A DNA stretch of 62,702 nucleotides, filler included, from Klebsormidium nitens (lineage: Eukaryota > Plantae > Klebsormidiophyceae), in the NCBI GenBank assembly GCA_000708835.1. It is 5 parts of 5 records of this genome, joined end to end, with 100 filler letters (N's around TTAATTAATTAA, not from the genome) between each part and the next. Parts side by side here need not be neighbours in the genome. Positions count along the whole stretch, not along the records: positions 43,329 to 62,702 come from DF237505.1; 4 more parts are not named here. One strand, 5' to 3'. This document shows positions 43,329-62,702 of this stretch, in pieces (the first letter of the stretch is position 1; each line of letters starts with the position of its first letter). The notes under the pieces were generated by a model, which made no database searches, was not told the DNA's origin, and saw only the letters and a program-made list of their open reading frames with translations. The position numbers were made by a program, and so were the translations under genes.

Positions 43329-45245
43329 CCCTTGCAACTGCTCCTTCTCCTGCCTGATAGCGTCTGCGTTTCCTCCGATCCTCAACGCATCTCTCAGTGC
43401 GCCCTCATTCGCTCTCATTTCCTCTTGCAACGCTCGCTCGGTCTCTTCCAGTTCGGCCACTCGTCGGAGGTGATCGGATATCGCACGTTGTTGAGCCGCC
43501 ACTCTATATCTCAGTACGACTCCCGTATCCTCTGCCTGTCGCAATCTATTACGCATGTTGGCGAGATTATTGTCACGATTGCCCAAGTTTCTCCGGGCCT
43601 CGTTCTCCCTGGCCCGTGCGGCGGTCAGGTCGGCTTCCTTCTCTCTGAGACGACGATCCAGATCGTTCCTCTCTTGTCCTAGCTCTCCGATGGTGCTATT
43701 CCGGGCTGCCACGGCCGATCCTAGTTCGGACTCCCTGATCTGCGCGGAGGTCAACTCGGTCTGCAACCTCTCGAACTCTCCCTCGAGTTTTTTCTTGTGT
43801 CTGCTGTATTCGAGGATCGTCGAGGCGAGTTTTGTTTCTTTCATCTCTGCTACGCGCAGAGCATCCTGGATGGATTGCAACTCCTGCTGCAACTGGTCCA
43901 CTTCTCGTTCGAGTCTTTCCGTTTCCGCTCCTTCGACAGGCCCTTCCCTCCTCGCGGCCTCTAATTCTCTTTCCGTTTCCTCTAGACGGTCCTCCAGATC
44001 TAGCTGTTCTTCTTCGTGCCGACTTACTGTCGCTCTGCTCTCGTCCGCGAGCGTTTCGAGTTCTTCTACTCGTGCCTGCGTCCTGTCCAATTCATCTCTC
44101 AACCGCTGACGTCGCTTCCGCGCGGAGGCCACCGCGTCCCGCGACCTCTGCAGTTCTTCCTCCATTTCGTGCCTGCGTTCGACATGTGTGGAAATAATCG
44201 ACCTAAGCCGTTCTTCGGTCCTCCGTGCTTCCTCCTGAGCATTCTGTAATTCATGCAACTCCTGCTGCAACCGGGCCACCTCGCGTTCGAGGCCCTCCGC
44301 ACTCTCACCCCTTCCTCTCGCGACTTCGAGTTCTCTCTTTAAACCTTCCAGGACGGCCTCCAACTGGAGCCTATCTTCTTCTCGCTTGGCAGCTGCGTCC
44401 TTGGTTTCGGTCAAGAGCCTCTCGAGTTCCTCCACTCTCGTCTTTGAAAGGTCCCATTCATCCCGGACATCTCGTAATTCCTGCTGCCGTTCGGTATTCC
44501 TATCGAGGGCCGCCCTCAAGTCCGTTCGCAGTCGTGCCAACTCGTCCTCCTTCTCGCGTCCGGCGTCCAATGCTTCCTCGAGCAAAGCGTGAGTCTTTTC
44601 GTACTGCGCCTTCTTCTCATCCACCTCCGCCGATTTCGCCCTCAGCTGCTCGCGGAGTACGTCTCTCTCGGTCTCCCCCAGCGTACGTTCTCGCTCTCCA
44701 TTCTCGAGTTCTCGCTCGATCCTTTCCTTCTCCCCTATCGTCCTTTCGAGCACCGCTCTCTGGTCGGCGGATTCCCTTTCTAGCCTGCTGTATTCTGACC
44801 TTATGGCGTTCAGGTCCGCTCGCAATCTCTTCTCGTGAGAGCGTTTCAGTCCCTCCGACTCGCCCCCGTGCCTCCTGGCTAAGCTCTGCACGAGTCTCTC
44901 CTTCAGGTCAGGGTCGGCCCGTCGCAGGAGGTCTCTCTTCTCTCTTTCGGACGCATCGAGAGCCTCTCTCAACCTCCTCACTTCGGTACCGCTCTCGAGA
45001 TGTTCGACCTTGGCTTGCAGCTGGACCACCTCTCTCTCCAGTGTCCTATCCTTCACGACGAATACGTTGCCGCTGCTCTCGCCCATCCTGTCTGCCTCTT
45101 CCAATAGTCGATCCGCTCTGAGTTGATCGACGAACTCCGACTCCTCTGCGGTCAAATGCGTAAGCATCTCCACGGAGGCACCCCCTTTCGTCTCCTTTCG
45201 GAACAGCTCTCTTAGGGTCTTTTTTCGTCGCGCACCGATAGCCAT
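43329..45245 (-). CDS. Long coiled-coil protein, 3' end in gap
   Basis: >630 aa of E/R/L heptad-rich sequence without stops. Confidence 0.75.
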
Positions 45246-45311
45246 CCTACGGAATGCCTAGAAATAAACTACAATCGTCCGCACGTCTCGATTTTTCTCG
45301 ACTGGTAGCAT

Positions 45312-45599
45312 ATGGCTACGCAGATCCCTCCCGTCCGCTGGGTGAAGGACCGGCACAAGGGAAAGAAGTTCTTTATGGAAGCTCTGAGGAACCGCGACGA
45401 CTGGATATGCCGCGTCAGACAGAAGGAGTCCATCCCCGCACCGAAAGCTGAAGACGACGGAGACGAAGAATTCTATGCAGACATCAAGGAGGGTTTCGCC
45501 GATCTGGACGAGACTCCGGCCGCTCCCGATATGCAGACCTTAGCGGCAGTCCTCGTCTGCTCGGGATTGATCGTGCTGCTGCTCTCTCACGTATGGTGA
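45312..45599 (+). CDS. Small protein with C-terminal hydrophobic (TM) helix
   Basis: 95 aa with an acidic middle and terminal LAAVLVCSGLIVLLL. Confidence 0.5.
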   Translation: MATQIPPVRWVKDRHKGKKFFMEALRNRDDWICRVRQKESIPAPKAEDDGDEEFYADIKEGFADLDETPAAPDMQTLAAVLVCSGLIVLLLSHVW

Positions 45600-46018
45600 T
45601 CGCGTGCGAAACGCGTCCGAAAAAAACATACATACCCGTACGAGTCATGAGTCCCCCTCTCAGCGAGTCTTCGAAGCACCTGAAAGCGGCCATCGCGGAG
45701 CAAGCGGAGGCGGCCATCGCTGCGGTCGACAGCGGTCGGAAGGACGCGAGGACGCGGCTGCGCAACAAGATCCACAACATGGAGAAGCAGGTCCGGCAGT
45801 TCAAGAAGACAGCCAACGAGCGGCTGAAGGTCGTGCAGGCACAGAAAGACAAGAAGGCGAAGAGCGACAAGAAGGGCTCGGAGAAGAAGTCAAAGACATC
45901 ATCCAGGAAGAAGCGTTCCGCGAGGACGAGCAGGAGGGTCTTGATCCCGGTGCAAGGGGCTCCGCAACAACCTCAGCGCATGAATCAACCGCAGCTGGCA
46001 TCGTTCATTCCCATATGA
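45593..46018 (+). CDS. Small basic, Lys/Arg-rich protein
   Basis: 141 aa; helical N-half and KKAKSDKK...SRKKRS tail; true start may be a later Met. Confidence 0.5.
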   Translation: MVIACETRPKKTYIPVRVMSPPLSESSKHLKAAIAEQAEAAIAAVDSGRKDARTRLRNKIHNMEKQVRQFKKTANERLKVVQAQKDKKAKSDKKGSEKKSKTSSRKKRSARTSRRVLIPVQGAPQQPQRMNQPQLASFIPI

Positions 46019-46087
46019 TCGAGACGACGCATCAGTACGATAACGCTATGCAGTAGGGGCGCCATGCGACCGAGCGAACCGATAGTC

Positions 46088-46119
46088 CGGTGCTGATATA
46101 GGGAACGCACATGCCCTCA
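46088..46119 (+). repeat. 32-bp direct repeat, left copy
   Basis: cggtgctgatatagggaacgcacatgccctca; 31/32 identical to 47227-47258. Confidence 0.95.
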
Positions 46120-46184
46120 CTAGAAACGATACGTGCGTTCTCCGATAGTGAAGAAATCTGGTCTGTCATAAGCAGGCCTACAGC

Positions 46185-47240
46185 ATGCCGAAGGCCCAGC
46201 ACGTCTGCGACACGTGTCACAAAGCGTTCTCCACTCGGAAGGACCTGACAAGACACATTCGCACACATACTGGGGAAAAACCTTATTTATGTGACGAAGA
46301 GGATTGTAGGACGGCATTCTCGACAAATCATGGACTGACCGTCCACAAACGTACTCATTCAGGTATAAGGCCCTATGAATGCGACGAGATAGGTTGCTTT
46401 GCAGCATTTACGACGGCTGGCAATCTTGCAATGCACAAGCGAACACATTCTGGCAAAAAACCTTACTCTTGCGACGAATGCTCTTCGAAATTCACTCAGA
46501 GTGGTGGATTGATCATCCACAAACGCAAGCACTCGGGCGAGAGACCTTACAAGTGCGATGAACCATACTGTACTGCTAGTTTCGCGACGGGTGGCAGCCT
46601 TGTAACCCACAAACGGAGACACGCTGGTATAAAACCTCACGAATGCGATGAACCAGGATGCTCCGCTACCTTTGTGGACGGTGGTGCTTTGAAAACACAC
46701 AAGCTCATTCATACTGGCGTCAAAGCATTTGCATGCGACGAGCCGGGTTGTACGTCAGCATTCATCAGTAGCGGCCGTTTGGTCGATCACAAGAAAATGC
46801 ACGACCCAAACAGGCCTCGGATGAACTCAAGAGGAGAGCAAGAGATCGCGCGAATACTGGAAGACTGGAAGGTAGCTTATCGACAAGAAGTCTTATTGGG
46901 GGACTCCCGTCGCAGATATGATTTCGGTCTCTTGGATGTGAGGTTGCTGATCGAGTTCGACGGCTATCAGCACTTTCATCCCGTAGCATTCTCGTGGCAG
47001 ACGGATCACTTCGCTGAATATCAGAAGAGGGTAGTCATCGACATCGAGAAGAACGAATTGGCCGAAAGTCAGGGCTATCTACTCTTGAGGATACACCACG
47101 AAGACCTCACGAACATGGAACCGGTCATTGCAGAAGCCATAGAAGATGCTACGCTCGGAAAGACGGGTGTCGTCTTCTCCCGGACAGAACCTTACCGTGA
47201 GAATATGGACAAATGGATAGGCGGTTCGGTGCTGATATAA
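46185..47240 (+). CDS. Seven tandem C2H2 zinc fingers fused to a Vsr/DUF559-like PD-(D/E)XK endonuclease
   Basis: Seven CX2-4C...HX3H fingers with TGEKP-type linkers, then SRGEQEI...RYDF...LIEFDGYQHF...DIEKN..A...GY.LLRI. Confidence 0.9.
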   Translation: MPKAQHVCDTCHKAFSTRKDLTRHIRTHTGEKPYLCDEEDCRTAFSTNHGLTVHKRTHSGIRPYECDEIGCFAAFTTAGNLAMHKRTHSGKKPYSCDECSSKFTQSGGLIIHKRKHSGERPYKCDEPYCTASFATGGSLVTHKRRHAGIKPHECDEPGCSATFVDGGALKTHKLIHTGVKAFACDEPGCTSAFISSGRLVDHKKMHDPNRPRMNSRGEQEIARILEDWKVAYRQEVLLGDSRRRYDFGLLDVRLLIEFDGYQHFHPVAFSWQTDHFAEYQKRVVIDIEKNELAESQGYLLLRIHHEDLTNMEPVIAEAIEDATLGKTGVVFSRTEPYRENMDKWIGGSVLI

Positions 47241-47258
47241 GGAACGCACATGCCCTCA
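47227..47258 (+). repeat. 32-bp direct repeat, right copy (contains the ZnF-nuclease stop codon)
   Basis: cggtgctgatataaggaacgcacatgccctca; TAA at 47238-47240. Confidence 0.95.
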
Positions 47259-47383
47259 GAATAGCATTCACAAAAACATCTACACAAAGATCCGTCTAAT
47301 AGCCGGCAAAAAATCTTCTGAGCTTAGACGTAGGCTGGGGGTCTGAGACTCCGATATGCCATACTAGTCCAAGAAAGTGCAGA

Positions 47384-48016
47384 ATGGATCGATCGAAGCA
47401 AGAGCAACTGCGGGCGGAGTACCGCCGGCTCTATGGACTCGGCTTGACACCCGTCTCTGTAAATATAACCAGCAGAGAGCAGGACGGCGTGCTGAAGAAG
47501 GTGGCAAACTTTTGCACCCAGTGGCGGGGGGTCACTCGGGACAATTGCTTGGACTGTTACTGGCCCGATGGCAACTCGATCGCGATCCGGACGGGGGAGG
47601 AGTCGGGGGTCCTCGTCCTGGACATCGACAACGCCTCCTCCGACGAGAAGCTCAACGGGATGCAGCTGCACGAGATGTGGACCCTGCGGCACGGGGAGCT
47701 GAACACGTGGACCGCAAAGACGGGTAAGGACGGGCTTCATCTGTACTTCAAGTTCCCGACGGAGGCCAGCTACGGGGTGAACAACCGGACCGGGTTGGTG
47801 GTCGAGGACAAGCTGTACGGCGTGGATATTCGCGGCCAGGGAGGAGTCATCTTCAGCCCTCCCTCCTCCTACCTGGCACCGGACGGGACCGAGCTGAGGT
47901 ACGAGTGGGTCAAGAGCCCTTTCGACACGCCGCTCGCGGAGGTGCCCGAGTGGCTGGAGGAGGTGCTGATCGAGAACGACAGGATCGGCAATTTCCTTTG
48001 GAATCCAGCAATCTGA
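47384..48016 (+). CDS. Prim-Pol primase-polymerase domain, no helicase attached (probably truncated)
   Basis: SIAIRTG..SGVLVLDID, GLHLYF, GVDIRGQGG...PPSSY, YEW...PEWL; homologous to the Prim-Pol domains at 2015 and 9523. Confidence 0.85.
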   Translation: MDRSKQEQLRAEYRRLYGLGLTPVSVNITSREQDGVLKKVANFCTQWRGVTRDNCLDCYWPDGNSIAIRTGEESGVLVLDIDNASSDEKLNGMQLHEMWTLRHGELNTWTAKTGKDGLHLYFKFPTEASYGVNNRTGLVVEDKLYGVDIRGQGGVIFSPPSSYLAPDGTELRYEWVKSPFDTPLAEVPEWLEEVLIENDRIGNFLWNPAI

Positions 48017-48773
48017 AGCCCATGCTAGATATGGATGAACGAGGGGGTCTGAATACGGTCTGGCGTGAACGCACATCTTCATGCGATGGCCACAGGTGAT
48101 GGATGACCGCACCTTTGGTAGTACTACTGGGAAACCAAGCGAATGCATTCAAGGCATCTGCACCAGGGGCATTGCGGCATCCTAGCGATAGAGTCAGAGG
48201 ATCGTCTAATTCCGAGGAGGATATGTACATGTATGAGGCATCATCTATTGTGGTTGACCGTGACGACGTGATGGGAGCATCGGTATCCCAACTCGTGGTC
48301 CCAGCTTCGAAACCCAACAATGCATGCAGGTCATCACCAGGGAATATGAGTCGGAACTTATCTAGGATCCTGTACTTGAGAGAGAAGCTGAAACACTTGT
48401 GCACGCGGTCATATGTCACGGAGAAGGGATTCAGGATGGAATAGGCTGGCCAGTTCCCTTCCTTGTATGCCTTTGAGGTAGAGTTCATGAGCCTCTGCAA
48501 CTCATCAGCTAGAGTGTACTCTGTATAATGTCCTGTCGGTATCCTTATGCTTAAGGTTGAGCTCATACCCGACGACTGTTCCTCCCAACTGAATACCTGA
48601 TTACCTTCCTTCACATTGTACTCTACGTTAGGAATGCAAGCAGTCACTAATTCTACTTTGTACACGTCTGTTAGAGGAGTGGGAAAGTAGACTCTAAAAT
48701 CACTAGCAGAGGGGAATTGAGCTCTGTCCCTGAATGTGGAGTCCACCACGAGGAGTTCCTCTCGGAAGTCCAT
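47910..48773 (-). CDS. Putative penton/minor-capsid-like jelly-roll protein
   Basis: N-terminal LVVDSTFRDRAQFPSASDFRVYF...VYKVEL...IPNVEYNV.EGN pattern recalls Polinton/PLV/NCLDV penton-like proteins; beta-rich. Confidence 0.55.
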   Translation of the reverse strand: MDFREELLVVDSTFRDRAQFPSASDFRVYFPTPLTDVYKVELVTACIPNVEYNVKEGNQVFSWEEQSSGMSSTLSIRIPTGHYTEYTLADELQRLMNSTSKAYKEGNWPAYSILNPFSVTYDRVHKCFSFSLKYRILDKFRLIFPGDDLHALLGFEAGTTSWDTDAPITSSRSTTIDDASYMYISSSELDDPLTLSLGCRNAPGADALNAFAWFPSSTTKGAVIHHLWPSHEDVRSRQTVFRPPRSSISSMGFRLLDSKGNCRSCRSRSAPPPATRAPPRAACRKGS

Positions 48774-48807
48774 GTCCTTACAAACACCAGACAATAAACC
48801 AGTGGCC

Positions 48808-49221
48808 CTAGAGACGCATATCCTCAGGAAGCTGCGACTCTGCCCCATCCTCTAGAGAGACTTGCTCGACTTTGTGCTCGATCAAATCCAGCGTGGTCCT
48901 TCTTTTCCACTGCTCATGCTTGACTTGCTCTACCATGAAGAGGTTGAATTGCATGGAACCTCTCATTGACTCTTTCAATGCAACCACCTCTGCCCTCAGC
49001 TTTAAGATTTCCTTGCACAACTCTTCTGTTGACATGCTATTCACGTCAGGAGGTGGTACTTCCTCCTCAATGGGACGAAGGTACTCTCTCCGCACGGCGT
49101 CCGCTTGCTCCCTCGTCCAAGCGGGTCCAGTGTTGCTCACCAGCTCCTTCAGGCGGTCCATCTGGGCCTTCGCTCTGGCCTCCAGGCGTGCTGCCTCGCT
49201 CCCTCCCCCATCAGGATCCAT
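48808..49221 (-). CDS. Hypothetical coiled-coil protein
   Basis: 137-aa ORF collinear with the neighbouring gene. Confidence 0.55.
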   Translation of the reverse strand: MDPDGGGSEAARLEARAKAQMDRLKELVSNTGPAWTREQADAVRREYLRPIEEEVPPPDVNSMSTEELCKEILKLRAEVVALKESMRGSMQFNLFMVEQVKHEQWKRRTTLDLIEHKVEQVSLEDGAESQLPEDMRL

Positions 49222-50197
49222 CTTTCTTGGCTAGTGAGAACGTCGTGGTGAGATTCTGAAATACCACATGAAATGTGAAACTTGACCACATGAAATGCGA
49301 TAAGTTGAAACTTGACCACATGCAATAGCTGGGTGAAGTTTTCGGAAGGATGTGGAAACCAGCGTTTGATTCAGGGATCATCACTGGACACTCGGAGGTT
49401 GAGCACGAGGAGGGGAAGGGGAATGACTTCCTACAGAAGCCACGTGCGATCCTCCTCAGTAGAATCTATTCTATATTTCCCTGCCATGTGCGCTTCCACG
49501 ACGGACCACACAAACCTTATCCTGGCCACCGTCACCCGTAATCATTGAGCGATTTCCCAAATCGGACCGGATCAATGTTGTTCCGAATCTGTTGTAACTG
49601 ACACATTACCGTCCGAAATATTTGTCATTTGTCGGACCGTTTCGATCGTAAAGACGTTTTTCTGACATCATACCGTCAGCAGTGCCGTGCGCACCGAAAT
49701 GTACGCGCGACCGTCCGATGTGATGTGGTCATCATTATTACCGTTTCCGTCGAAAATGTCGCGCGAAACCGACCGGTTGGACCCAAATTGGATTTGTTGT
49801 CGTATATAATTGTCCCTCGTGGTTACTACATACGACATTCCGGTATTATAAGCGCTAAGCTTATATACCATAACCAGGAGGGTGCGTAAAATTCCCGAGG
49901 TCTATTTACTTAAGGAGACTCATAGGGGTGGCCTCATGCCAAAGAGTTTTGCCGATCAAGTAGTATATGAGGATTATTCGCGGATACCGGGCGTAAAAAA
50001 CCCGGCAGCTTGTGGATAGCCGGTACCGGTTCATACTCGTATGGACGTAATACAGCATTATTAACGCTTATTCGCTCGGATAACGCCCGGTTCGGGCGAC
50101 AGTTTGGGCGAAAACGGTAATAAGTACATTTACGGGCTTTTCATGTGCTCTCTGCGTCAGCATGTGCTGGACGACACACGGGGTTCCACCTCCAAAT

Positions 50198-50971
50198 TTA
50201 AGTACACTCCAGACACTGACAGCTGATTGAATGCATGGACCTCGCCTCCAGATACGTCTCGGAATCCGACGATTCGGCTGCTGATGCAACTGCCATGAGT
50301 GACGCGCGCCTGGCATGCCGCGTTCTGACATGTTCCAAGACCCTGTCCGCACCTTCTCGGTTCGCACATATGGTGGGCCGCGTGCCGAAGTTGACTCGGC
50401 ATTGCGTGGCGACGACCCCTCTTCCCAACGACCTCAAGCTCTCGTGAACCTCCCTGCGAATCCTGTCTCTCTTCCAGTCACGAAAGTGAGCTGCCACGAC
50501 GTCGAACACGCTCATGAGCTCGCCATCCTCGGTGGTCCTTACCTCTGGCACCTTGGTGCTAGAGGGTGGCCTCCTTTTAGGTCCTTTCTTCTCCCTCAAA
50601 GCATGGATATCAGACCTGAGCGAGTTCACCGTCTCCACTAGCTGATCGATGGTCCTCTTCAGAGCTATCAGGGGGCTCTGGCAAGCTGGTTCCTGAGAGC
50701 TGACAAAGCGCAACTCCAACTCTTGCGAATCCACCATCGGCAGGCTGACGTTCAGGGCCCTGAGCAGCATCCTGCAGCCTTCCAGGTCGACGGCAGGCGT
50801 CTCACCGCCTCTCTTGTCGAACGCGTACGTGGACGTCTGTCTGACCATCCCGGAATCCAGCAAGGCTCGCCACTTTCTGCGTGGATTGGAGTGTTTACCC
50901 AACTTGCTGATAACATCGTAAGCGGACGCGAGGAATGGTTCCTCACTGGTGAATCTGATCTGACTGGTCAT
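50198..50971 (-). CDS. Protein with two Bro-N/KilA-like DNA-binding repeats
   Basis: SAYDVIS..G...PRRKW...F...GGETPAVD..G and SVFDVV...F..RPTICAN..G, separated by a coiled coil. Confidence 0.5.
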   Translation of the reverse strand: MTSQIRFTSEEPFLASAYDVISKLGKHSNPRRKWRALLDSGMVRQTSTYAFDKRGGETPAVDLEGCRMLLRALNVSLPMVDSQELELRFVSSQEPACQSPLIALKRTIDQLVETVNSLRSDIHALREKKGPKRRPPSSTKVPEVRTTEDGELMSVFDVVAAHFRDWKRDRIRREVHESLRSLGRGVVATQCRVNFGTRPTICANREGADRVLEHVRTRHARRASLMAVASAAESSDSETYLEARSMHSISCQCLECT

Positions 50972-51004
50972 GGACCGGTCGGTCTTACATTCGGTTCTCA
51001 ATAT

Positions 51005-51481
51005 TTAGCAAGCGTGCTGGACGCTCTCTACGTGCCTATGCAGGAACATCTCTGCTTCGTCCTCTGGTGCCCAATCGTCCCACGTGGCGACGGCCTCCCT
51101 CACACCGTCGCACGTAGGGCACCGGCATTCGTCCAGCAAACCTTCCGTCTCCTCTTCGCACCCACTGCGTTCGGACGCCGTTTCCCAAGCCTCCGAATCG
51201 GAATCCCCGCCGTCCCTCAGCTCCAGCTCCGAATCTGCTATGTCTGCCTCCAGGTCCTCGTAGCGAAGGAATCGCCTCGCCTCGTACTTGAGTGCCATGA
51301 TGACATCTTCTCGCGTGACGAGAGTCCTCTGCGCGTGCTCTGCGTATGCTGCTGCGGTCTTTGCTGCATTCTTCACCATGGTATACACGAGTGCTAGCAG
51401 CTTATTCACAAATGTTTCGTCCAGCGAACGAGCCGTCCTATCATCCGAACCGGCGCTCATGAACGCGTAATCGGACGCCAT
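51005..51481 (-). CDS. Histone-fold (H4-like) protein with acidic, Cys-containing tail
   Basis: AAKTAAAYAEHAQRTLVTREDVIMALKYEAR aligns with H4 DAVTYTEHA.RKTVTAMDVVYALKRQG. Confidence 0.7.
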   Translation of the reverse strand: MASDYAFMSAGSDDRTARSLDETFVNKLLALVYTMVKNAAKTAAAYAEHAQRTLVTREDVIMALKYEARRFLRYEDLEADIADSELELRDGGDSDSEAWETASERSGCEEETEGLLDECRCPTCDGVREAVATWDDWAPEDEAEMFLHRHVESVQHAC

Positions 51482-51495
51482 AGCTTCCTTCGCAC

Positions 51496-52924
51496 ATGCG
51501 AAAAAATATCCTGATTTCGGACGCCGATGCGGGAGTGGCGTCCGTCACAATATCTCGCTCTAGGATAGCGATGTCGGGTTCTCGATTCAAATCATGGATG
51601 GGATATTCGGACAAGGCGGTGGAAAGTCCGCAATGCAAGAGTTGCGAGGAATTGGAGAAGAGACTGAACAACGCGAGGGTGGCCCTCGTTCTAGCCGACA
51701 ATTACGCGGAGAGACTCACCCGAGCGCGGGAGGTCTTTGTGCAGAAGCTGGGCGACCAGATCAAGGGCCCTCTTCACGGTGTGGTGGGAATCTGCGGTGC
51801 TATGAGAGAGGAGAATGCACTTCCTCCGGACGCTCGGATCCAGATTGGCGTCATAACCGAGATGTGCGGCCAGATCCTCACGACCATCAACGAACTCTTG
51901 CAGCTCGACACGGCGGAGTCCGGGCGCATGTGCATGGAAAACGTGTCTTTCGATCCGAGGAGGATGACGGACCTCGTCTTCAAGCTGCTCTCGAAGAAGA
52001 TGATCCAGAAACGCGTCGGTCGGTCCATCGACATTCACAAGGACGTGCCAAAGAGCCTGGCCGGTGACGTTTCGCGCCTCCGGCAGTGTCTCGTCGAGAT
52101 CCAAGATACCCTCTTGGAAGAGTCGAGGCCCGGAGACGTGTTGGAGTTGAACATGCGGGTGCTCGATCCAGAGGAACAGCTCATAGCCACCATGCCTCGG
52201 TCCAAGAGGTTCATTCCTTGTCTGTACGAGCTCAAACTGAGGCGAGTACCCCAGCGCGAACTGGCGAATATGGAGCAAGTGGACATCGAGAGGGAGAAGG
52301 AGCCCCAGATCGTACTGAGCGCCGAGTTGGCGCAGGGGTTGAACGGGCGCCTCCTCCGCACGCAGAACTACGCTGCGTTCCACCTGGTGGTCCACTTCCG
52401 CCACCCCATAGGCGGAGCCAATCCCAGCGTCCGATACAGCGCGTCCAGGGACCCGGTGACTGCGGACAAGAAATACACGATCCTACTGTACGACGAGAAC
52501 CCGGTCTTCCTGAAGTTGGTGTGCAAGAGCTTGGCTTCCAAGGGTCACGTGGTCGACATTATGCGAGACATCGAGGAGGTCATAGGATTGGTGGAAGCTG
52601 GGACCGTGCACGAGACGTACGATTGCGTCCTGGTGGACGCGCGACGGCGGTCTGCAATTCGTAGAGAGCTTGCGAGACGTGGAGGAGAGGAACGGCATCG
52701 GACGCATCGCCATACTCCTATCTGTGGTACATGGAACCGAAGGGTGGGAGAGGAGATATGCAGACGCGCGCGTGGACGGTCAATTCCTCAAGCCATGTAC
52801 GGAGGAGACCCTACTGAGTAGGATCAAGGACGCCATGAGTGCCGCGAGCTCTCTGGTTCCCATCGAGGGTGGTGAGATCAGTCAGAACTCATCGTCAAAC
52901 AATAGCGCTCGATCGGGTTCTTGA
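51496..52924 (+). CDS. Degenerate hybrid histidine kinase-receiver protein, with a frameshift near 52640
   Basis: HisKA-like GDQIKGPLHGVVG (His replaced by Asp), then GDVSRLRQCL, with N and G1 boxes not recognisable. Receiver LLYDEN...YDCVLVD continues in another frame as DGGLQFVESLR...RIAILL...FLKP. Confidence 0.8.
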
Positions 52925-53127
52925 AGAAAGCAAAGTTTATCGCGGGAGAGGCCACGAGATCCTCCACCGTCTCCAGATCGGTGGCCGGGTCCGTCGCGAG
53001 TGGGGCCCCCTAGGAGGATGTGCCCCCTGGGAGGGTGCGCCCCCTTGGGGCCCTTGTCCGCCAGGACTGCCAACATGCGTGCCATTGTTGCGAACAAGCG
53101 TGTCAAATACATGTTAGAAAATAAATT

Positions 53128-54510
53128 TCATGAGGATTTAGGATTTTCAGTCTCGGGCTTCTCAGCTTTCAAAGCCCTCTTTGCATCACCCCTCTCCTTC
53201 AACACCGCTTTCACGTACGTCTGCCTCATTGACTGCCTCTCTATCTCCCTCATCAAATCTCCCCTTAGGTCCTCTGCTAACATCTCTCCCAGGTTCTCCT
53301 CGACTCTCTGTAAAGTCTCCAGGGCGAACTCGTCGTACCTTCTAAGCTCGACAAAGTAGCCTTTCATTCTGTTGCAAAAACTACACACCCAAGAAAAGTT
53401 GCCAGCATAAGATTCAACCGCAACGTCCGTTCGATCTATCTGGGGAAAGCTTCCCGGCCCTCCACGCAATCGGTTCCACTCGCACTGCATGTCACAGATC
53501 CCGCACCTTCGCTCCTGACGCAACCAGGCAGCCATCGCCTCCTCATCTGTCAAAAGCTGCGGCGTCCTACCGACGATGCTACACCTTGCCTTGCTGGCTG
53601 TGTTGCGGTTGGTCACACTCTTGTGAACGAGTGACCTCTCGTGCTCTTTGGAAAAGAACTGCATGTATCTGTTTTCTACAGGTCCGAGCACTTTCCTCAT
53701 GTCAGGCAGCTTTCCCGTAAGCGTGTCCGACGCCTTTAAAGATTCGTATGTCGGCAGGTTTGCTTCAACCTCCTCCCATATGGCGAGTTGGGTGAACTTT
53801 ACAGCCTCCTTCTCATCGTCGTCCTCATCATCCTCCACTTCAGACCCTGCCGTTATATTGCTCCGGCTGTTCTCTTCCATCTTGCAGAATATCTCCATGA
53901 GGGTCAAGCACATGTCTTTGAGTTCTGGATCGTCCTTTTTCAGAAGCCCGTCCAGGATCTTCCGGGTGTCCTGTCGTACCACGTTCAGCCTTTCCTTGAA
54001 GGCCACCGATCGAGTTAACCCATTCCGACAAGGCGAGCACATCCACGCTGCTTTCAGAACATCGTCCAACCAGAGGTGGGATTCGTGCAAGGGTATGGCC
54101 GTTCCGCACAGCGTGCACCTATCCAGAAAGTCGGGAACCTCGACCACTTCGATCTCGTCTGACTCGTAAATAGCGCACCTCATCAGTTTGAACAGACTGT
54201 CGACTTTGTCCTTCAACAGAACTTCGTCCGAATCGGTCTGCTCGACCACTTCTCTCATCTCACGAATCATCCGTCGGGTTTCGTCGGCTAGAGCCAGGAT
54301 CTGAGCAATCTTTTTCTCGTTCCTCTCATCTTCCTTGGCCTTGCGCTTTTTCAGGAGCTTTTCCTTCTTCTCCGCCGCCTTCCTCTCTTTCTCCTGGAGC
54401 GCCTCCGCAGCCGTGTAAACCCTCACGTTCCCCTCGGTTCGTGGGCGCTCGATGCTGATATCCGCGCTCATGCCATCGGCTATCTGTAGAGTGTACTTGC
54501 GTTTGGCCAT
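53128..54510 (-). CDS. Large protein with C-terminal HNH/His-Me-finger-like nuclease motif and an internal CxxC..CxxC
   Basis: RCGIC...QIDR.D....Y..NFSWVCSFCNRMKG. Likely start MAKRKY (54510), because the longer ORF runs through promoter-like repeats. Confidence 0.55.
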   Translation of the reverse strand: MAKRKYTLQIADGMSADISIERPRTEGNVRVYTAAEALQEKERKAAEKKEKLLKKRKAKEDERNEKKIAQILALADETRRMIREMREVVEQTDSDEVLLKDKVDSLFKLMRCAIYESDEIEVVEVPDFLDRCTLCGTAIPLHESHLWLDDVLKAAWMCSPCRNGLTRSVAFKERLNVVRQDTRKILDGLLKKDDPELKDMCLTLMEIFCKMEENSRSNITAGSEVEDDEDDDEKEAVKFTQLAIWEEVEANLPTYESLKASDTLTGKLPDMRKVLGPVENRYMQFFSKEHERSLVHKSVTNRNTASKARCSIVGRTPQLLTDEEAMAAWLRQERRCGICDMQCEWNRLRGGPGSFPQIDRTDVAVESYAGNFSWVCSFCNRMKGYFVELRRYDEFALETLQRVEENLGEMLAEDLRGDLMREIERQSMRQTYVKAVLKERGDAKRALKAEKPETENPKSS

Positions 54511-54555
54511 TTCGTGTCTGATCGGAATGATGGTAGTGTGGCCCATGAGGTCCTC

Positions 54556-54737
54556 CTTATATAGGCAGATCGTGGCGTCCGAAACTGCAGTCCTGCAAGT
54601 TCTAGATGCTGGCGAGAAAACCGTCCGAAGCTGGCGTCCGAAACTGCAGTCCTGCAAGTTCTAGATGCCACGTGGAGAGAGAAACACGTCCGAAGCTGGC
54701 GTCCGAAAGCGCGGCTCGGACCCTATATAGGCAGGAT
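54556..54737. promoter_or_regulatory. Repeated divergent-promoter-like region
   Basis: ggcgtccgaaactgcagtcctgcaagttctagatgc twice (~54574, ~54633), gtccgaagctggcgtccgaaa twice, tatataggcag twice (~54558, ~54724); lies between divergent ORFs. Confidence 0.6.
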
Positions 54738-54778
54738 GCGAAAATCGATGGACCATTTCAAACGATCCATTTCAAACG

Positions 54779-55570
54779 ATGGAGCCTACCATCTCGCAAA
54801 GGGAAGTGTACGCCAAGTTGCCACTCGAAATTGCAAAGGACATCAGCGATCGCGCCAAGAGAAGGGAGCTCAAAGTGCTCTACCGTTGGATATGCGACCA
54901 GAAGCGACTGCTCGAGCGCGAGATATTGGTGCTGCCCAGACGCGGAGCTTTCGCGGATTACGCGTATGGTTACGACATCGAAGACACGTGGCAAGTTGCG
55001 ACTATACCGACCGAAGTCCGCTGGTATGCCAGGAGACACTTTTCCTGTCTGAAATTTGAGGAGTGCAAGGATTTGTCGGTTGACGTCTCAGTCGACGACG
55101 TGGATGTGCTGTCAAAGACCCGGGCTCTGAACATGCTGTACTGTATGATCGTGAGCAAATGGTGGGGAGACTTCCTCATATCCAAGCTTAGGTGTTCGTA
55201 CGAGGACGCACCTAAGGGTGACGACTCCGAAGACGAGTCTAATTCCGAAAACTCGGACGGCGAGGACTCGGACTGCGAAGAAGATCAGAGACCCTACTCG
55301 GAGATAGCAAAGGACTTCTTCCCGGACTCCCGGACGCTCGATGCGTTCGTCAGCATGATGACCCTGTACAAAAAGGATCTCGCGATGTTTTGTAAGAAAT
55401 ACGAACAGAGTCGAGTCGAAGTGGAAGAATATCTCCAGCAGCTATACTTGGAAGATCTGAGAGTGTTGTTCGAGAACCAGCGTACAGAGAGTGAGGTCAA
55501 AGCGAAAGGATACTACTCGGAAACCCTGGAATTGCTCTTGCTCTTCGAAGGAGGGCACCTGGACACATGA
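54779..55570 (+). CDS. Hypothetical protein (possible F-box-like LPLEI start, acidic patch)
   Basis: 263-aa ORF with normal composition following the TATA-like motif. Confidence 0.6.
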   Translation: MEPTISQREVYAKLPLEIAKDISDRAKRRELKVLYRWICDQKRLLEREILVLPRRGAFADYAYGYDIEDTWQVATIPTEVRWYARRHFSCLKFEECKDLSVDVSVDDVDVLSKTRALNMLYCMIVSKWWGDFLISKLRCSYEDAPKGDDSEDESNSENSDGEDSDCEEDQRPYSEIAKDFFPDSRTLDAFVSMMTLYKKDLAMFCKKYEQSRVEVEEYLQQLYLEDLRVLFENQRTESEVKAKGYYSETLELLLLFEGGHLDT

Positions 55571-55697
55571 ACGGAAACCCGGACAGAATATACCTCGATT
55601 CGTTCCGCTCGAACGTCCGAATGCCAATGCCCAAACATGCATGCACGCATTTGGAGTTCTGCCCGAAAATTCCCTGGGAGTATATTATATCCTCGTC

Positions 55698-55820
55698 ATG
55701 GATAACGTCGTAGTCGTGCTAGTCGGATTTGCACTCGTGTGTCAGATCCTCATAGTATGTATGATATGCATCGGTGCATTCTGTCCGGACGAGGAGGAAG
55801 AGAAGGATCTTCTGGAATGA
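55698..55820 (+). CDS. 40-aa single-TM micro-protein with acidic tail
   Basis: MDNVVVVLVGFALVCQILIVCMICIGAFCPDEEEEKDLLE. Confidence 0.35.
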   Translation: MDNVVVVLVGFALVCQILIVCMICIGAFCPDEEEEKDLLE

Positions 55821-55869
55821 TGTAAGAACAGAGATCCGATTCTGGCGTCCGAAACTTCCAGACTTCGTC

Positions 55870-58455
55870 CTAAACAACGACTTCCTCCAGTTTCGCCAAG
55901 AGCATGTCCAGTTGGGAACTATATAGTCCATTCCTGGCTCTCTCTCTTTCCTGCGCGGCTCCCCTCTTCTGCCTCTCCGCCTCTAGATCCTCGTGCAGCC
56001 CTTCTGCTCTTCTCTCCGCACTTTCCCTCGCCCCTTTCTCGGACGCCAGGGCTTCTCGCAACTCCGCGTTGGCCCTCTCCACGGCCTCGATGCTCCGACG
56101 CAACTCCTCTTTGCTCCGCCTCTCAGCCTCCAGCTCTTTCTCTATTTCGCACACTTTACTCTTTTCGGCATCCAGCAGCCTCCGCAGCTCTTCTCGTTCG
56201 GCTTCGAAGTTCCCCCGCAACTCCTTCTCCCTCTCCTCCCTCTCCCGCCTCTCTGTCTCCAAACCCGCCCGCAGAGCCCGCCCCTCGTTCTCGAGCCTCT
56301 TCCGCAGCTCCTCTACCTCCCTCAGAACCGTCGCGTCGACCAACGCCGGCTCTCCCCCGACTTCTCTCTCGCCGTCTGCGAAACCCCCGACCCAGCCCAG
56401 ACTCTCCAATCGAGAGGATACGCCGTTTCGGAGGTCGAAGCACGTCGTGCGGTAGATCGGAACTTCCACATTTGCCACCCGAACCGCGCGTCTAACCCCG
56501 GCCATCGTCTCGATCGTCTGGCGTGTTATCTCGTCGCAGTGGACAGCTTTCCCCAAGTCCTTGCCGTACGTGAGCTCTCCCTTTGTGTTCGCTTGCAGAG
56601 TCGCTCCCGGGGCAAAGGTATGGAAGTCGCTGAATTCCACGAACCCGGGCTGCATATCAGTGTCTCCGGAGATGCCTTCCACGAGCCCCTGAAGCTTGCA
56701 AGAACACTGCGAGGCCCTTAGTTGCACTGCATTGAGGATGCTCCGCAGCTGCTCCAGCTCCGGGAAGACGTAGACCCCATCGAGCTCCCACGTGGCTTCC
56801 ACAGCACAGTGGACGCAGGTCTGCACTAGTTTGCCACCCCGCGTTCCGCGCACGGACGCCAGACAAAGGTCCCTCTGGCAGTGTTCGCACCTCCACCCGT
56901 ATCCGTCCTCTGCGTTCACCCACTTCTCGTAAGGCCCTCCTCGTTGCGTCGGAGGGTAACGATAGTCCACGCCGTCCACGCGGTAGTCTGCTTCGTCCAC
57001 GTTCTCGATGGGAATGCCCCGCTCCTGCAGGATCTGGATCCCCGCTGAAGTCCACTCCACCGCTTCCGCGAGCCACGCGAGGGCGTGCGCGCAGATGGAC
57101 TTGCACTGTTCGGGGTGCTCCAGGAAATCCAGTGCCATCTTGATGACCGGCACCATGGCAGGGCCATTCACGCCACTGCCCTCTGCAAACGGAAGGAATA
57201 CATTTCTTTCAGTATGTAGTAGATGCAATGCCATCGATCAGCAGAATTGGCTTCACCATCCCACCCCTTTCTGAAACCACAGCCTTTTATACTACAACGC
57301 TGTGCGGCTCGAATCTCTCTCTCAGAGATGATAATCAAACGGGACAGGTACATATAATATCTCACCTCGCTCGTAGAAAGTACTGAATCTATCTGCAGCC
57401 AAACAGTAGCGGAAAAGCGAGCTGGGGAAGGCAGCATTCACGGCGTAGGCACAGCAGAGGCCAGAGTTGCGCACCTGCACGCACGATGACTTGAAGATAT
57501 TTGACATGTGCTCTCTGTAGAATAAGACCCATCCAGTAAAGATCCTTCTATCTTTTGCTCGTCCGTCACCCTAGGAAATCTGGACACTGGAGCTCACCAT
57601 GTGTGGACCCGTGGTGAAGACGAACCACCCTTCCTCTTGCGTGGCGGTGTAGTAGGGAATCTCCCAAAGGTCCAGCGTAGCCAGAGGTATGACGAGCTTC
57701 TTCCCCAAAAATTGGTTGACCGAGTCCTCTCCCCCAGTCTCCCGCAACTTTGCCATCAGAACCGTGGTCCAAACCCCTGGGATGATGATCCACTGCTTGG
57801 AAGAACCTCCAAACAGATAGTTCAGGCTCTCCAGCAGAAGATCTTCCAGATGCATGGGAGCTAGGGTATCTCTCCCACCCGCATACCACATGCCTGTGGT
57901 GATGCCGACGTGAACCATGGCGAAGTTGAAGCAGAAACGCAGGTTGTCCAGGAATGGTTGTCCTACGTTCCTGCCTTTCTCTGTGGTCTTGGCATCAGAA
58001 GCATACTTCCGCTCTGGAAGGGCAAAGCGCGGATCCCCCAACTCAGAGAAGAACCCTAACCCATCTACCACTGCGTCCGCTGCAGACCCCGGCAGCCGCC
58101 CCTCGTGGTCCGAACAGAATCCATCATAATCTGCCTGTTCGACCTCCCCCCTCTGCAAGACCCTAACGCCCTTGTCTAGAGGCTGCAAGTGTTGAGGTGT
58201 AACCTCCATCCTCATTTTCGCTCTCTTCTTTCTCTGGCCCTTGACAGCGCAACCCTCGTCCTCTCCTGCTTTCCTCTGTGGAAGCGTATGCTCCAGATCT
58301 GCATCTCTCACCTTTAGCAGGATGGCCCCATACCTTTCTGCTAGAGGTCTGGCTACGGTCTCCAGGAACTTTGCGAAACCCCCTGCAGAGATCAAGGTCA
58401 AGACACTCACTACCAGGCGGGGCACCTCCCCTCCATAGAACCTACCAGGCGCCAT
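55870..58455 (-). CDS. JmjC histone demethylase-like protein (759 aa, two introns) with KDM6-like helical/Zn tail and C-terminal coiled coil
   Basis: Exons 58455-57598, 57474-57366 and 57182-55870 splice in frame (2280 nt). Fe triad H-x-E (MHLED) ... H (GPHMVRNSG); LNY and KQW 2-oxoglutarate-binding positions; then RYCLAADRF, AMVPVIKM, RCEHC...TCVHC. Confidence 0.88.
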
Positions 58456-58747
58456 TATCGCTTTCCTCGTCTTTCTCGCTGAATTGTTGGAGATGTGAAG
58501 CTGAGCCTATACGCAGGTCGGACTGCCGTACCATTACCAGTGTTTACCGGTGGTTACCGCGACGAAATCTTCGCTCTAGTACGCAATCATTGGAACCCTA
58601 GGCCCAGAACGGTCTCTACCGTAGATATCCGTTCTGAGCCGTCCGATCGGGCGCCGGAATCGGCGCGGTGTTTTTGAAAAAGTTCAGGGTCTGGAAGGAA
58701 GCAATTAATCCTCACTTTACTTGGGAGAGAGGCACTGGCTAGGCGCA

Positions 58748-59524
58748 ATGGCGGCGGAAGCGTTCCTCAAGCTAGATCAGAATGCACTCAGGCTGATCTT
58801 TGACAAGGCTGGGGTTTCCATAGCCACGGTCAAGGAGGTCTGCAAGGATTGGCTGCTGGTGGGGAGGCGCATCTGCCGGAAGCTGACGTTGACTGGGAAT
58901 GAGGTCATTCCTAGGGATGGAACAGCGGGGGTCCTGAGCTGCCTGCAAGATGTGAAGACCCTGGTCATAGAGAAAGGCTGCTTCCGCAGAGGATCCAAGC
59001 TGCGCCAGAGCACGTTGAAAAGCATCGTAGCTGGAGTGTCGTACAGGCATGTGCAGATAACGAGCCCCCCACTCAAGACCTGTCCTGGGCTAGTTGCGAC
59101 CCTTCACAAACACCTCAACATGGACAGGCTGAAATGCATTTGTCTGTCTGCCCCGTGCATCCCGAAAGTGCTGCTGGCCTTCCTGATCAGTCAAGGGAGA
59201 TGTCTGGAGACCATCCTCATGGGGGGCACAGAGGATGGAGACCTCTCAGCTGCCTTGCAGTCGATTCTGATCAACCACAGCGTCAAGAATTTCGCTCTCA
59301 ACGGACACACGATCTCCGACATGCATCCCTTATCGACAGCCCTTCCCATGCTGTCGTACCTGAGCGTGGAGGTGTTCGGAGAGGTGGACTGGGCTGGTCT
59401 GAAAGGACTCAAAGAGCTTCAGCAGCTCTACGTCGCGATCAAAGGCTCCCACCCGTCCGAAGGAGGCCTGTTCGAGACTCTGGCAGAAATGAAGGGCGTG
59501 ACCGTGGTGGATGTGAAAAAATAA
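58748..59524 (+). CDS. F-box/LRR-like protein
   Basis: N-terminal FLKLDQNALRLIF...VKEVCKDW followed by LxxLxL-type repeats. Confidence 0.6.
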   Translation: MAAEAFLKLDQNALRLIFDKAGVSIATVKEVCKDWLLVGRRICRKLTLTGNEVIPRDGTAGVLSCLQDVKTLVIEKGCFRRGSKLRQSTLKSIVAGVSYRHVQITSPPLKTCPGLVATLHKHLNMDRLKCICLSAPCIPKVLLAFLISQGRCLETILMGGTEDGDLSAALQSILINHSVKNFALNGHTISDMHPLSTALPMLSYLSVEVFGEVDWAGLKGLKELQQLYVAIKGSHPSEGGLFETLAEMKGVTVVDVKK

Positions 59525-59560
59525 GGGTCAGACTGGGGTGAGGATCGGAATGCCAGCACC

Positions 59561-60133
59561 GTGGTCTCCGCACAGACCTTGGCTCTAGCGTTTGCCGGGC
59601 GTGACATGCTAGAAGTAGACATCATGACAGGTAGTGCGGGTGTAGGAACCGTGGTCACGGATGGCTTGCTGGCAGCCACGTCGGGAACGATCAGACACCT
59701 GGTCATCGACATAGCCAACCTACACATGGCCGCGGATGCGGGCAGCCCCCACCCCATTACCGGGTGCACTGGTTACGACCTAGACAAGGCGAGAGCGTTG
59801 GCGGTGGCGTTGCGATCGAAGAGGGTCTATAGTATTTCTCTGCGCGCGGGCAGGGAGTGCGGATCGTTGGGCGATTGTGTCTGCCCTTCGGACTTGTTGG
59901 AGGTATTGGTGAGGGAGAGTGGGGCACGATTCGTCTTGTCCGACGCACTTGTGACTGCTTTTGTCGGCATGAAGGAGGAGGATTTTAGAGCTCGCTTCGG
60001 AGATAATCCGAACCCGCTCGGCATAGAAGTCATGAAAAAGCAGATATGCTGCGCTCAGCCTGTGAGGTTGCAAAGGTCTCGTTGCTGTGGCCCCCAAGGT
60101 CAGGGTCTCGAAAGTCTACCCGAGACTTGGTGA
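59561..60133 (+). CDS. Hypothetical protein
   Basis: ORF collinear with the F-box gene; no recognised motif. Confidence 0.4.
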   Translation: MVSAQTLALAFAGRDMLEVDIMTGSAGVGTVVTDGLLAATSGTIRHLVIDIANLHMAADAGSPHPITGCTGYDLDKARALAVALRSKRVYSISLRAGRECGSLGDCVCPSDLLEVLVRESGARFVLSDALVTAFVGMKEEDFRARFGDNPNPLGIEVMKKQICCAQPVRLQRSRCCGPQGQGLESLPETW

Positions 60134-60315
60134 GAGCATTCGGGGGGCACTGGATAGATCCTAGCTCCATATAACACTTGCGAATCTGAATCCTATCATC
60201 CCTTACTCTGTTCCACTTCTCGTGCACAAGCCATGATCATTCAACACTTGTAATGCATCTGACGTTGCACCTCGAAATGTTTCCAATTGGGAGATCACCG
60301 TACGATTCGATGTTA

Positions 60316-62584: not shown

Positions 62585-62606
62585 TACTATACAGCATGTG
62601 GTCCGG
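62440..62606 (+). ncRNA. Predicted Fanzor omega-RNA (scaffold through the right TIR plus flank-derived guide); 5' boundary approximate
   Basis: Position matches TnpB/Fanzor omega-RNA. Hairpins tgcctaga/tctaggca (62492-62517) and ctcgg/ccgag (~62519-62535). Guide would be ctatacagcatgtggtccgg after the TA. Confidence 0.7.
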
Positions 62607-62702
62607 TTGCCATCTGCGTTGCACCTCGAATATATTGCCGGTTGAGATTGCTGGTTGTCAGTACGTTTCTTAGTATACATTCTCCTCTTCATCATGAAGA
62701 CA

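Follow-up and report, generated by a model that had tools for sequence, protein, structure and literature searches.

Homing endonucleases of the EDxHD family are typified by I-Bth0305I, a dimer with an N-terminal NUMOD/HTH part and a C-terminal Vsr-like domain that leaves a two-base 5' overhang, and the free-standing Hef-type enzymes of phages belong to the same family (PMC3239194). The Vsr endonuclease contains a zinc site of its own and Trp residues that intercalate (PMC3239194). The present analysis concerns a gene in Klebsormidium nitens DNA that encodes a C2H2 zinc-finger array fused to a nuclease of this kind (hereafter the zinc-finger nuclease, ZFN) and lies at 46185..47240 on the + strand of the window, by which is meant the whole stretch of 62,702 nucleotides analysed, filler included. 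The piece of the window that holds the gene (43329-62702) is a 100% match to the final 19,374 nt of scaffold DF237505.1 (K. nitens; 59,529 bp; GCA_000708835.1). In T-even phages, the free-standing homing endonuclease genes seg, mob and Hef resemble the ZFN in being single genes placed between conserved genes of replication or nucleotide metabolism, and in being present or absent among close relatives. The phage enzymes differ in being of the GIY-YIG, HNH or EDxHD type with NUMOD-type binding parts, and their insertions are not known to be flanked by direct repeats, unlike that of K. nitens.

The ZFN reading frame is intact, being open for 351 codons and encoding 351 amino acids. Seven C2H2 fingers occupy residues 8-206 (46206..46802, +), as evident from Pfam (zf-H2C2_2, 5e-38, in six stretches; zf-C2H2, 4e-25) and from a motif scan. 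The seven units follow the pattern C-x2-4-C-x12-H-x3-5-H, recur with a period of 28-30 residues and are joined by TGEKP-like linkers (TGEKP, SGIRP, SGKKP, SGERP, AGIKP and TGVKA). No NUMOD was detected in the ZFN by Pfam, and the protein therefore does not carry the N-terminal NUMOD/HTH part of the EDxHD enzymes; the modular layout is kept, with a different module.

The C-terminal domain (approximately residues 214-331; 46824..47177, +), delimited by alignment, an AlphaFold2 model and Foldseek, is a nuclease of the Vsr fold and EDxHD type. Its match to Pfam DUF559 (PF04480) is marginal, covering only positions 46-102 of the 109 in the profile and scoring 22.2 bits for the domain alone and 18.7 bits for the whole protein against a gathering cut-off of 20.6. 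The C-terminal ~140 residues match PHROG families of homing endonucleases and intron-encoded nucleases, the best two at 7e-16 and 4e-14 and the others ranging to 5e-5. The catalytic Glu/Asp/His/Asp set is represented by E257, D259, H263 and D286, which are invariant in 27 of 27 aligned members, as are D246, G260, Q262, K289 and R302 (ZFN numbering). A search of the PDB with the sequence profile returned 3HRL (E = 0.002) and 3R3P, the catalytic domain of I-Bth0305I (E = 0.4; a crystal with two active-site mutations), as the top two entries, and the E-x-D-G and D-x-x-K stretches fall on matching stretches of 3R3P, a correspondence of stretches in a profile alignment rather than a residue-by-residue superposition. 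The single-sequence search of the PDB with the nuclease domain gave a chance match to an enolase only.

The AlphaFold2 model of the nuclease (predicted local distance difference test, pLDDT, 90.3) is predicted to adopt the Vsr-type alpha/beta fold. Foldseek retrieved Vsr on DNA (1CW0) as the best match, at 1.7e-4 and a template modelling (TM) score of 0.64, together with 3R3P (3.4e-4, TM 0.73 on target), 1VSR (1.6e-3) and the DUF559 protein 3HRL; FokI appeared at rank 48 with a probability of 0.05. The first-pass annotation of this DNA had described seven C2H2 fingers with TGEKP-type linkers joined to a Vsr/DUF559-like nuclease. The fusion is borne out by the reading frame and by the Pfam, PHROG and fold matches, and the label given to the nuclease holds at the level of the fold, while its closer functional kin are the EDxHD homing endonucleases. 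A HMMER scan of 1.84 billion cluster representatives placed 1712 proteins in the nuclease family at E<=1e-3, in which the domain is nearly always C-terminal and the N-terminal parts are varied and of very different lengths. In IMG/VR, 129 nuclease relatives were confirmed.

Since a Vsr-like C-terminus follows an N-terminal DNA-binding part, as in I-Bth0305I, the ZFN has the EDxHD layout, with the C2H2 array replacing the NUMODs. It shares with the EDxHD enzymes the C-terminal Vsr fold carrying Glu/Asp/His/Asp and a virus-borne position beside or inside genes of DNA metabolism. It differs from them in its seven C2H2 fingers and in belonging to a giant virus of eukaryotes rather than to a phage, and from I-Bth0305I in lying free-standing outside any intron or intein, its similarity to 3R3P being weak. 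The Vsr and DUF559 proteins (1CW0, 1VSR and 3HRL; PF04480) have the same fold and active-site layout, but Vsr is a single-domain bacterial nickase specific for mismatches, with no sequence-reading array. The R2 non-LTR (long terminal repeat) retrotransposon protein also combines natural C2H2 fingers with a PD-(D/E)xK-type nuclease; it has a reverse transcriptase and one to three fingers instead of seven, and its weak Foldseek ranks (17-30, probability 0.2-0.3) indicate a likeness of fold class only. Engineered ZFNs (C2H2-FokI) carry an N-terminal TGEKP-linked C2H2 array and a C-terminal cleavage domain of the PD-(D/E)xK superfamily, as does the K. nitens protein, which is however natural and has a nuclease of the Vsr type rather than the FokI type. 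ZFNs are usually presented as a human invention, and a natural, conserved C2H2-Vsr/EDxHD fusion would show that viruses reached the same design. A literature search found no paper describing such a fusion, although one may still exist.

C2H2 arrays of at least three fingers were present in 10 of the 218 distinct members of the nuclease family that were gathered (~5%). The C2H2-bearing members include contigs of giant-virus metagenome-assembled genomes of 234-351 kb (L006/L007) and 264 kb (L036/L038/L039), as well as the AT-rich L004/L005. The nearest-neighbour identities among these fusions (~40%) are too low to tell one fusion origin from several. The closest full-length relative, P0002, has 458 amino acids, nine motif-matching fingers and a nuclease 51% identical to that of K. 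nitens, and the two proteins have the finger-to-nuclease junction DPNRP in common. Its gene lies on a metagenome contig (L002 9370-10416, -) and converges on a gene for the small subunit of ribonucleotide reductase (Pfam 1.4e-107). Ribonucleotide reductase and primase surroundings are typical neighbourhoods for homing endonuclease genes. The fusion recurs in several giant-virus lineages and would add a eukaryote-type DNA-reading module to the repertoire of homing endonucleases.

An exact look-up of the 351-residue protein returned no record, because the annotated model omits the fingers. The NCBI model KFL_005560135 (P0001; window 46821-48016) splices the nuclease domain to the neighbouring Prim-Pol primase and leaves out all seven fingers; its 'intron' removes the ZFN stop and the intergenic block, whereas the relatives have two separate genes. 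This chimeric model is probably an annotation artefact, and it is corrected by the present finding. An ordinary algal gene, for which KFL_005560135 would be the real product and the fingers either untranslated or the remnant of a separate host transcription factor, is hardly credible as an explanation. The annotated model does exist, and C2H2 arrays with TGEKP linkers are typically eukaryotic; yet fingers and nuclease form one uninterrupted frame with a common DPNRP junction in K. nitens, in P0002 and in the related viral contig L086, the ZFN stop and the intergenic block are conserved, and Prim-Pol stands alone with its own start in two further relatives (L082 and L092).

Relatives of the locus were gathered by protein look-ups on the flanking genes (sample identifiers among the sources: SRR14092358-60, SRR16630550, ERZ23831752, ERZ23268497 and JGI 3300060284/5) and fall into five kinds of allele. 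The K. nitens allele consists of a small open reading frame (ORF), a Lys-rich ORF, a 66-nt spacer, the left repeat, the ZFN, the right repeat and Prim-Pol; the ZFN lies 143 nt upstream of Prim-Pol and is free-standing, with no sign of an intron or intein. In three contigs from ENA and Logan assemblies (L085/L086/L087; 83% DNA identity), which stop short of the left junction, the ZFN is followed by one 32-mer and then by Prim-Pol. The ZFN tail and stop position in L085/L086 are the same as in K. nitens, and their 32-mer is of the TAG form, matching the K. nitens left copy at 31/32 and the right copy at 30/32 positions. The L086 ZFN frame is open for ~400 codons up to the contig edge, which is a copy of a Fanzor-like terminal repeat and is explained by a single insertion or else by a break in the assembly; the L085 copy of the ZFN, which is short and of low coverage, has one in-frame stop in its covered part.

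The remaining alleles have no ZFN at this place. In the JGI contig L082 (~72-76% identical), the small ORF and Prim-Pol are 483 bp apart, as compared to 1991 bp in K. nitens, and one diverged copy of the block stands at the same distance to the Prim-Pol start as the right repeat. The downstream flank in L082 resembles the right flank in K. nitens (a score equalled in 1 of 300 shuffles), and the block itself also matches (3 of 300). In the Logan contig L092, the small ORF and the Lys-rich ORF are followed by 3.9 kb of other genes, one block copy, a Prim-Pol-D5 gene of 950 amino acids and an HNH/NUMOD gene; homology with K. nitens is lost at the stop of the Lys-rich ORF (46018) and found again from 47234 on, within the right repeat. 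No ZFN was found by tblastn in L082 or L092, and none lies beside Prim-Pol in L083/L084 (53% Prim-Pol identity). A ZFN remnant in L082 was considered and discarded, the left flank being no better than shuffles and tblastn being empty. Orthologous flanks with no ZFN and a single diverged block copy, the empty site anticipated by the first-pass annotation, are present in both L082 and L092.

As judged from this comparison of alleles, the ZFN is accessory: it occupies a variable site immediately to the left of the block, beside a viral primase, and related viral sequences have at this spot a ZFN with a different array of fingers, other genes or no insert at all. By the DNA identity of Prim-Pol, K. 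nitens is nearer to the ZFN-less L092 (86%) than to the ZFN-bearing L086 (83%), and at least one gain, loss or replacement must therefore have occurred among close relatives. The locus is a rare natural series of occupied alleles with two arrays, other-gene alleles and empty alleles, in which the target and the insertion history are readable by sequence comparison. The HNH/NUMOD gene of L092 (11148-11948) encodes a 266-residue HNH_3 / I-HmuI-NUMOD endonuclease directly after Prim-Pol-D5; in this group of viruses, the primase gene therefore attracts nucleases of the homing type at either side.

The two halves of the ZFN have evolved differently between K. nitens and L086. The nuclease is 86% identical in amino acids, with proportions of nonsynonymous (pN) and synonymous (pS) differences of 0.06 and 0.36, respectively, and on these figures the nuclease part is under purifying selection. 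The corresponding values for Prim-Pol are 88%, 0.07 and 0.56. The finger region is only 50% identical (pN 0.32, pS 0.77), the array has seven fingers in K. nitens and at least eight in L086, and every recognition helix differs. The synonymous excess in the fingers points to an array that was exchanged or rebuilt, beyond a mere faster change of amino acids. The arrays would have been exchanged or rebuilt with the cutter kept, since nucleases of 86% identity are joined to arrays of different length, with unlike helices and saturated synonymous differences. A wider reading, which we put forward tentatively and with some doubt, is that giant viruses of algae and protists carry a natural ZFN family in which the C2H2 array is swappable, the cutter is kept and the 32-bp block marks the site of action. 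A swappable array, if true, would make this a protein-based, naturally re-targetable nuclease.

The selection on the nuclease bears on a different explanation, in which the ZFN is a viral nuclease or nickase that resides at its site, does not move and serves the virus itself, for example against competing co-infecting genomes, in attack on host DNA or in a role beside the primase, and the repeat is incidental. Besides purifying selection, this explanation would account for the retention of all invariant residues, for the same position by Prim-Pol in two lineages ~17% apart, and for the lack of flanking repeats at the other family members examined. The array, however, is unconserved between alleles, as would hardly be expected of an enzyme with a fixed house-keeping target. 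The gene is moreover lacking in L082 and in L092, the closest relative by Prim-Pol, whose primase is full-length; the 51% relative lies at another locus, and the GC content is unlike that of the flanks (0.50 for the cassette vs 0.58-0.61 in K. nitens; 0.52 vs 0.58 in L086). A resident gene is accordingly regarded as unlikely.

The left copy of the direct repeat has 35 nt (46085..46119, +), with a 32-nt core at 46088-46119, and ends 65 nt before the ZFN start codon. The right copy (47224..47258, +), located by the repeat scan, comprises the last codons and stop of the ZFN and the start of the conserved block preceding Prim-Pol. The copies are identical at 33 of 35 positions, and the 32-mers (46088-46119 and 47227-47258) at 31 of 32. 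The TAA stop of the ZFN (47238-47240) falls within the right copy; in the same register the left copy has TAG, with only 14 codons open before it. Two copies only are present in the piece, and none of 100 shuffles contained such a repeat, which is far beyond chance. The bracketing of the gene by 31/32 direct repeats with the stop in the right copy, as first noticed by the first-pass reader, is hence confirmed by the repeat scan, the shuffles and the coordinates. The 32-mer is not a common intergenic motif, as a search of 21 kb of the scaffold and of four related contigs gave no further copy; other copies of the 32-mer or of the ZFN may exist elsewhere in the K. nitens genome, which was not covered at the DNA level. 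Its 25-nt core was absent from the IMG/VR scan; the scan of JGI metagenome contigs was also empty but is uninformative, as the collection does not hold these samples: a control 20-mer invariant in the Prim-Pol alleles gave no JGI match either, though the JGI contig L082 has it. An 8-nt perfect inverted repeat between part of the left copy (46103-46110) and sequence 22 nt downstream (46133-46140) is absent at the right copy and in the relatives, and is probably due to chance.

When K. nitens is compared with L086, intergenic conservation is highest in the 32-mer (31/32, against ~70% for the rest), and across all alleles no part of the Prim-Pol upstream region is better conserved than the right-hand 25 nt of the repeat. 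The remaining conserved intergenic region 5' of Prim-Pol (47259..47383, +) has 52-72% identity to L092, L086 and L082. The strong conservation of the 25 nt agrees with a repeat that arose by local duplication, by capture of the upstream (regulatory) block of the primase or as the leftover of a tandem duplication, unrelated to the arrival of the gene; the left copy, 65 nt upstream of the ZFN start, is also plausibly placed for upstream signals. The ZFN-less alleles are nevertheless single-copy, the extra gene of K. nitens lies precisely between its two copies, and the similarity between the repeat flanks ends at 35 nt, so that nothing of a larger duplication is left. A duplication of this kind is consequently considered rather improbable.

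Direct repeats around a single-gene insert, with single-copy empty alleles, would also be produced by a transposon or an integrase-driven cassette, the repeats being a target-site duplication or attL/attR. The ZFN is, however, the only long ORF between the repeats, with no transposase, integrase or reverse transcriptase; terminal inverted repeats do not exceed chance, the best inverted match between the cassette ends being 9/10 nt, which was reached in 30 of 100 shuffles; and no second copy of the cassette is known. Usual target-site duplications are far shorter than 32-35 bp. Such an element is thus very unlikely. The earlier proposal that the gene moves as a cassette stands in part: the accessory distribution (ZFN-less L082/L092), the relative at another locus and the GC contrast favour it, while the missing transposase, integrase and terminal inverted repeats and the unfixed left edge do not.

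The explanation that we favour, and hold to be reasonably probable, is that the ZFN is a free-standing gene of the homing endonuclease type at a variable site, the insertion of which would have duplicated ~32 bp of the primase upstream block. It is supported by the fold, the invariant residues and the PHROG matches, by the architecture that matches I-Bth0305I, by the presence and absence of the ZFN among close relatives, by the gene neighbourhoods of P0002 and of the L092 primase, by the GC contrast, by the selection on the nuclease and by a repeat far beyond chance. The enzyme would cut a long site near the locus in genomes that lack the ZFN, and recombinational repair would copy the gene in, an intron-less homing as in the free-standing endonucleases of T-even phages. 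In the ancestry of K. nitens, the left side may have been repaired imprecisely, with duplication of ~32-35 bp of the primase upstream block. The ZFN frame now ends in the right copy, reading into the block for its stop, and the left copy, placed 65 nt ahead of the start codon, may supply upstream signals.

Several observations weigh against homing. Of homing itself, the pattern of presence and absence is what was seen, and cleavage, binding and movement were not observed. Direct repeats are not left by homing of the classical type and are lacking at the other family members examined, hence the repeat needs the extra assumption of imprecise repair: around eight other copies of ZF-nuclease genes (five distinct genes), flanking direct repeats were at the chance level of 10-14 nt only, and flanking repeats as a trait of the paralogs, a possibility raised at first reading, are not upheld. 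The place and the nuclease sequence are kept over ~17% nucleotide divergence, which fits a resident useful gene as well. Gly, Ser and Thr abound in the recognition helices of the K. nitens fingers, a composition atypical of strongly base-specific fingers. The ZFN-less alleles have diverged by 14-28%, too far for the exact edges of the insertion to be read; only one assembly shows the left junction; the homology between K. nitens and L092 ends 66 nt before the left repeat, so the left edge cannot be fixed; and the upstream flank in L082 is no closer than shuffled sequence to either of the repeat flanks of K. nitens. In the L086 lineage, the left junction was not recovered, as L089 from the same sample ends ~70 nt past the upstream ORF without overlap to L086.

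The first-pass annotation had further suggested that the fingers recognise the repeat. With both copies intact, the occupied allele would stay cleavable, which makes this awkward; recognition of the repeat is therefore somewhat unlikely, and the repeat is a candidate site only. A site spanning the edge of the block or lying inside Prim-Pol is at least as likely as the block alone. A crude site derived from the finger helices with the textbook recognition code had no match in the window at <=3 mismatches, a result that is uninformative and carries no weight.

The surroundings of the gene look viral rather than algal. The ORFs of the piece assigned by Pfam are the Prim-Pol primase (47384-48016), DUF5901, HisKA-like, JmjC and TnpB/Fanzor-like. 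The giant-virus (Nucleocytoviricota) hallmarks found are Prim-Pol and DUF5901 in the piece and D5_N, DUF5906 and AEP_C962R in the syntenic L082/L092; L002, which carries P0002, encodes the ribonucleotide reductase small subunit as further hallmark context. Phycodnaviridae-like giant-virus core genes have been reported from K. flaccidum/nitens (PMC5294986). From these genes the end of DF237505.1 appears to be giant-virus-like DNA, and the ZF-nuclease gene sits in giant-virus-derived DNA that is integrated in, or was assembled with, the K. nitens genome.

The upstream neighbour, which forms the left anchor of the locus, is the small ORF (45312..45599, +), whose 95 amino acids include one hydrophobic segment; its identity to P0156/P0157 is 72-75%, and it is orthologous to L082 9443-9594 and to L088-L092. 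The Lys-rich ORF (45593..46018, +; 141 amino acids), to which Pfam assigned no family, is the last left-side stretch common to K. nitens, the ZFN-less L092 and L089. By blastn, the window aligns with L092 and L089 up to 45955-46016 and diverges after the stop of the Lys-rich ORF. The 66-nt spacer between the common left flank and the left repeat (46019..46084) is found in K. nitens only and is unaligned with L089/L092.

The downstream neighbour is the viral Prim-Pol (AEP primase) ORF (47384..48016, +; Pfam PF09250, 4.8e-19). It is shortened by one truncation to 210 codons (210 amino acids), as compared to 620-950 in the relatives, where it continues into D5_N/DUF5906: the Prim-Pol-D5 protein has 620+ amino acids in L086 and carries D5_N and DUF5906 in the 950-residue form of L092. 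Synteny between K. nitens and the relatives is gone beyond this truncation, and the two observations together suggest that the viral insert has decayed or been rearranged.

At the left end of the piece, a long coiled-coil ORF (43332-45245, -) has an internal 378-nt periodic similarity and a weak match to the CENP-F leucine zipper. It belongs to a kinesin-like gene model of 2195 amino acids; L082, the syntenic viral contig, has a kinesin-like gene too. At the right end, a TnpB/Fanzor-like ORF of 634 amino acids (60562-62466, +; Pfam Cas12f1-like TNB, 2.4e-5) is bracketed by 29-nt inverted repeats (60314-60342 / 62558-62586) that are 90% complementary, the element spanning 60314-62586. Fanzor1 copies of K. 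flaccidum/nitens have been published (PMC10530073). The terminal sequence of the Fanzor-like element recurs in L002 (6941-6972 and 7039-7070) and at the left edge of L086, and the Fanzor-type element is probably multi-copy and common to these viral sequences. A motif of ~21-37 nt occurs at several intergenic places (54573-54717, 55825-55863 and 60386-60417), including an exact 37-nt pair 59 nt apart and one inverted copy near the Fanzor-like ORF, and may be a regulatory or repeat-element motif.

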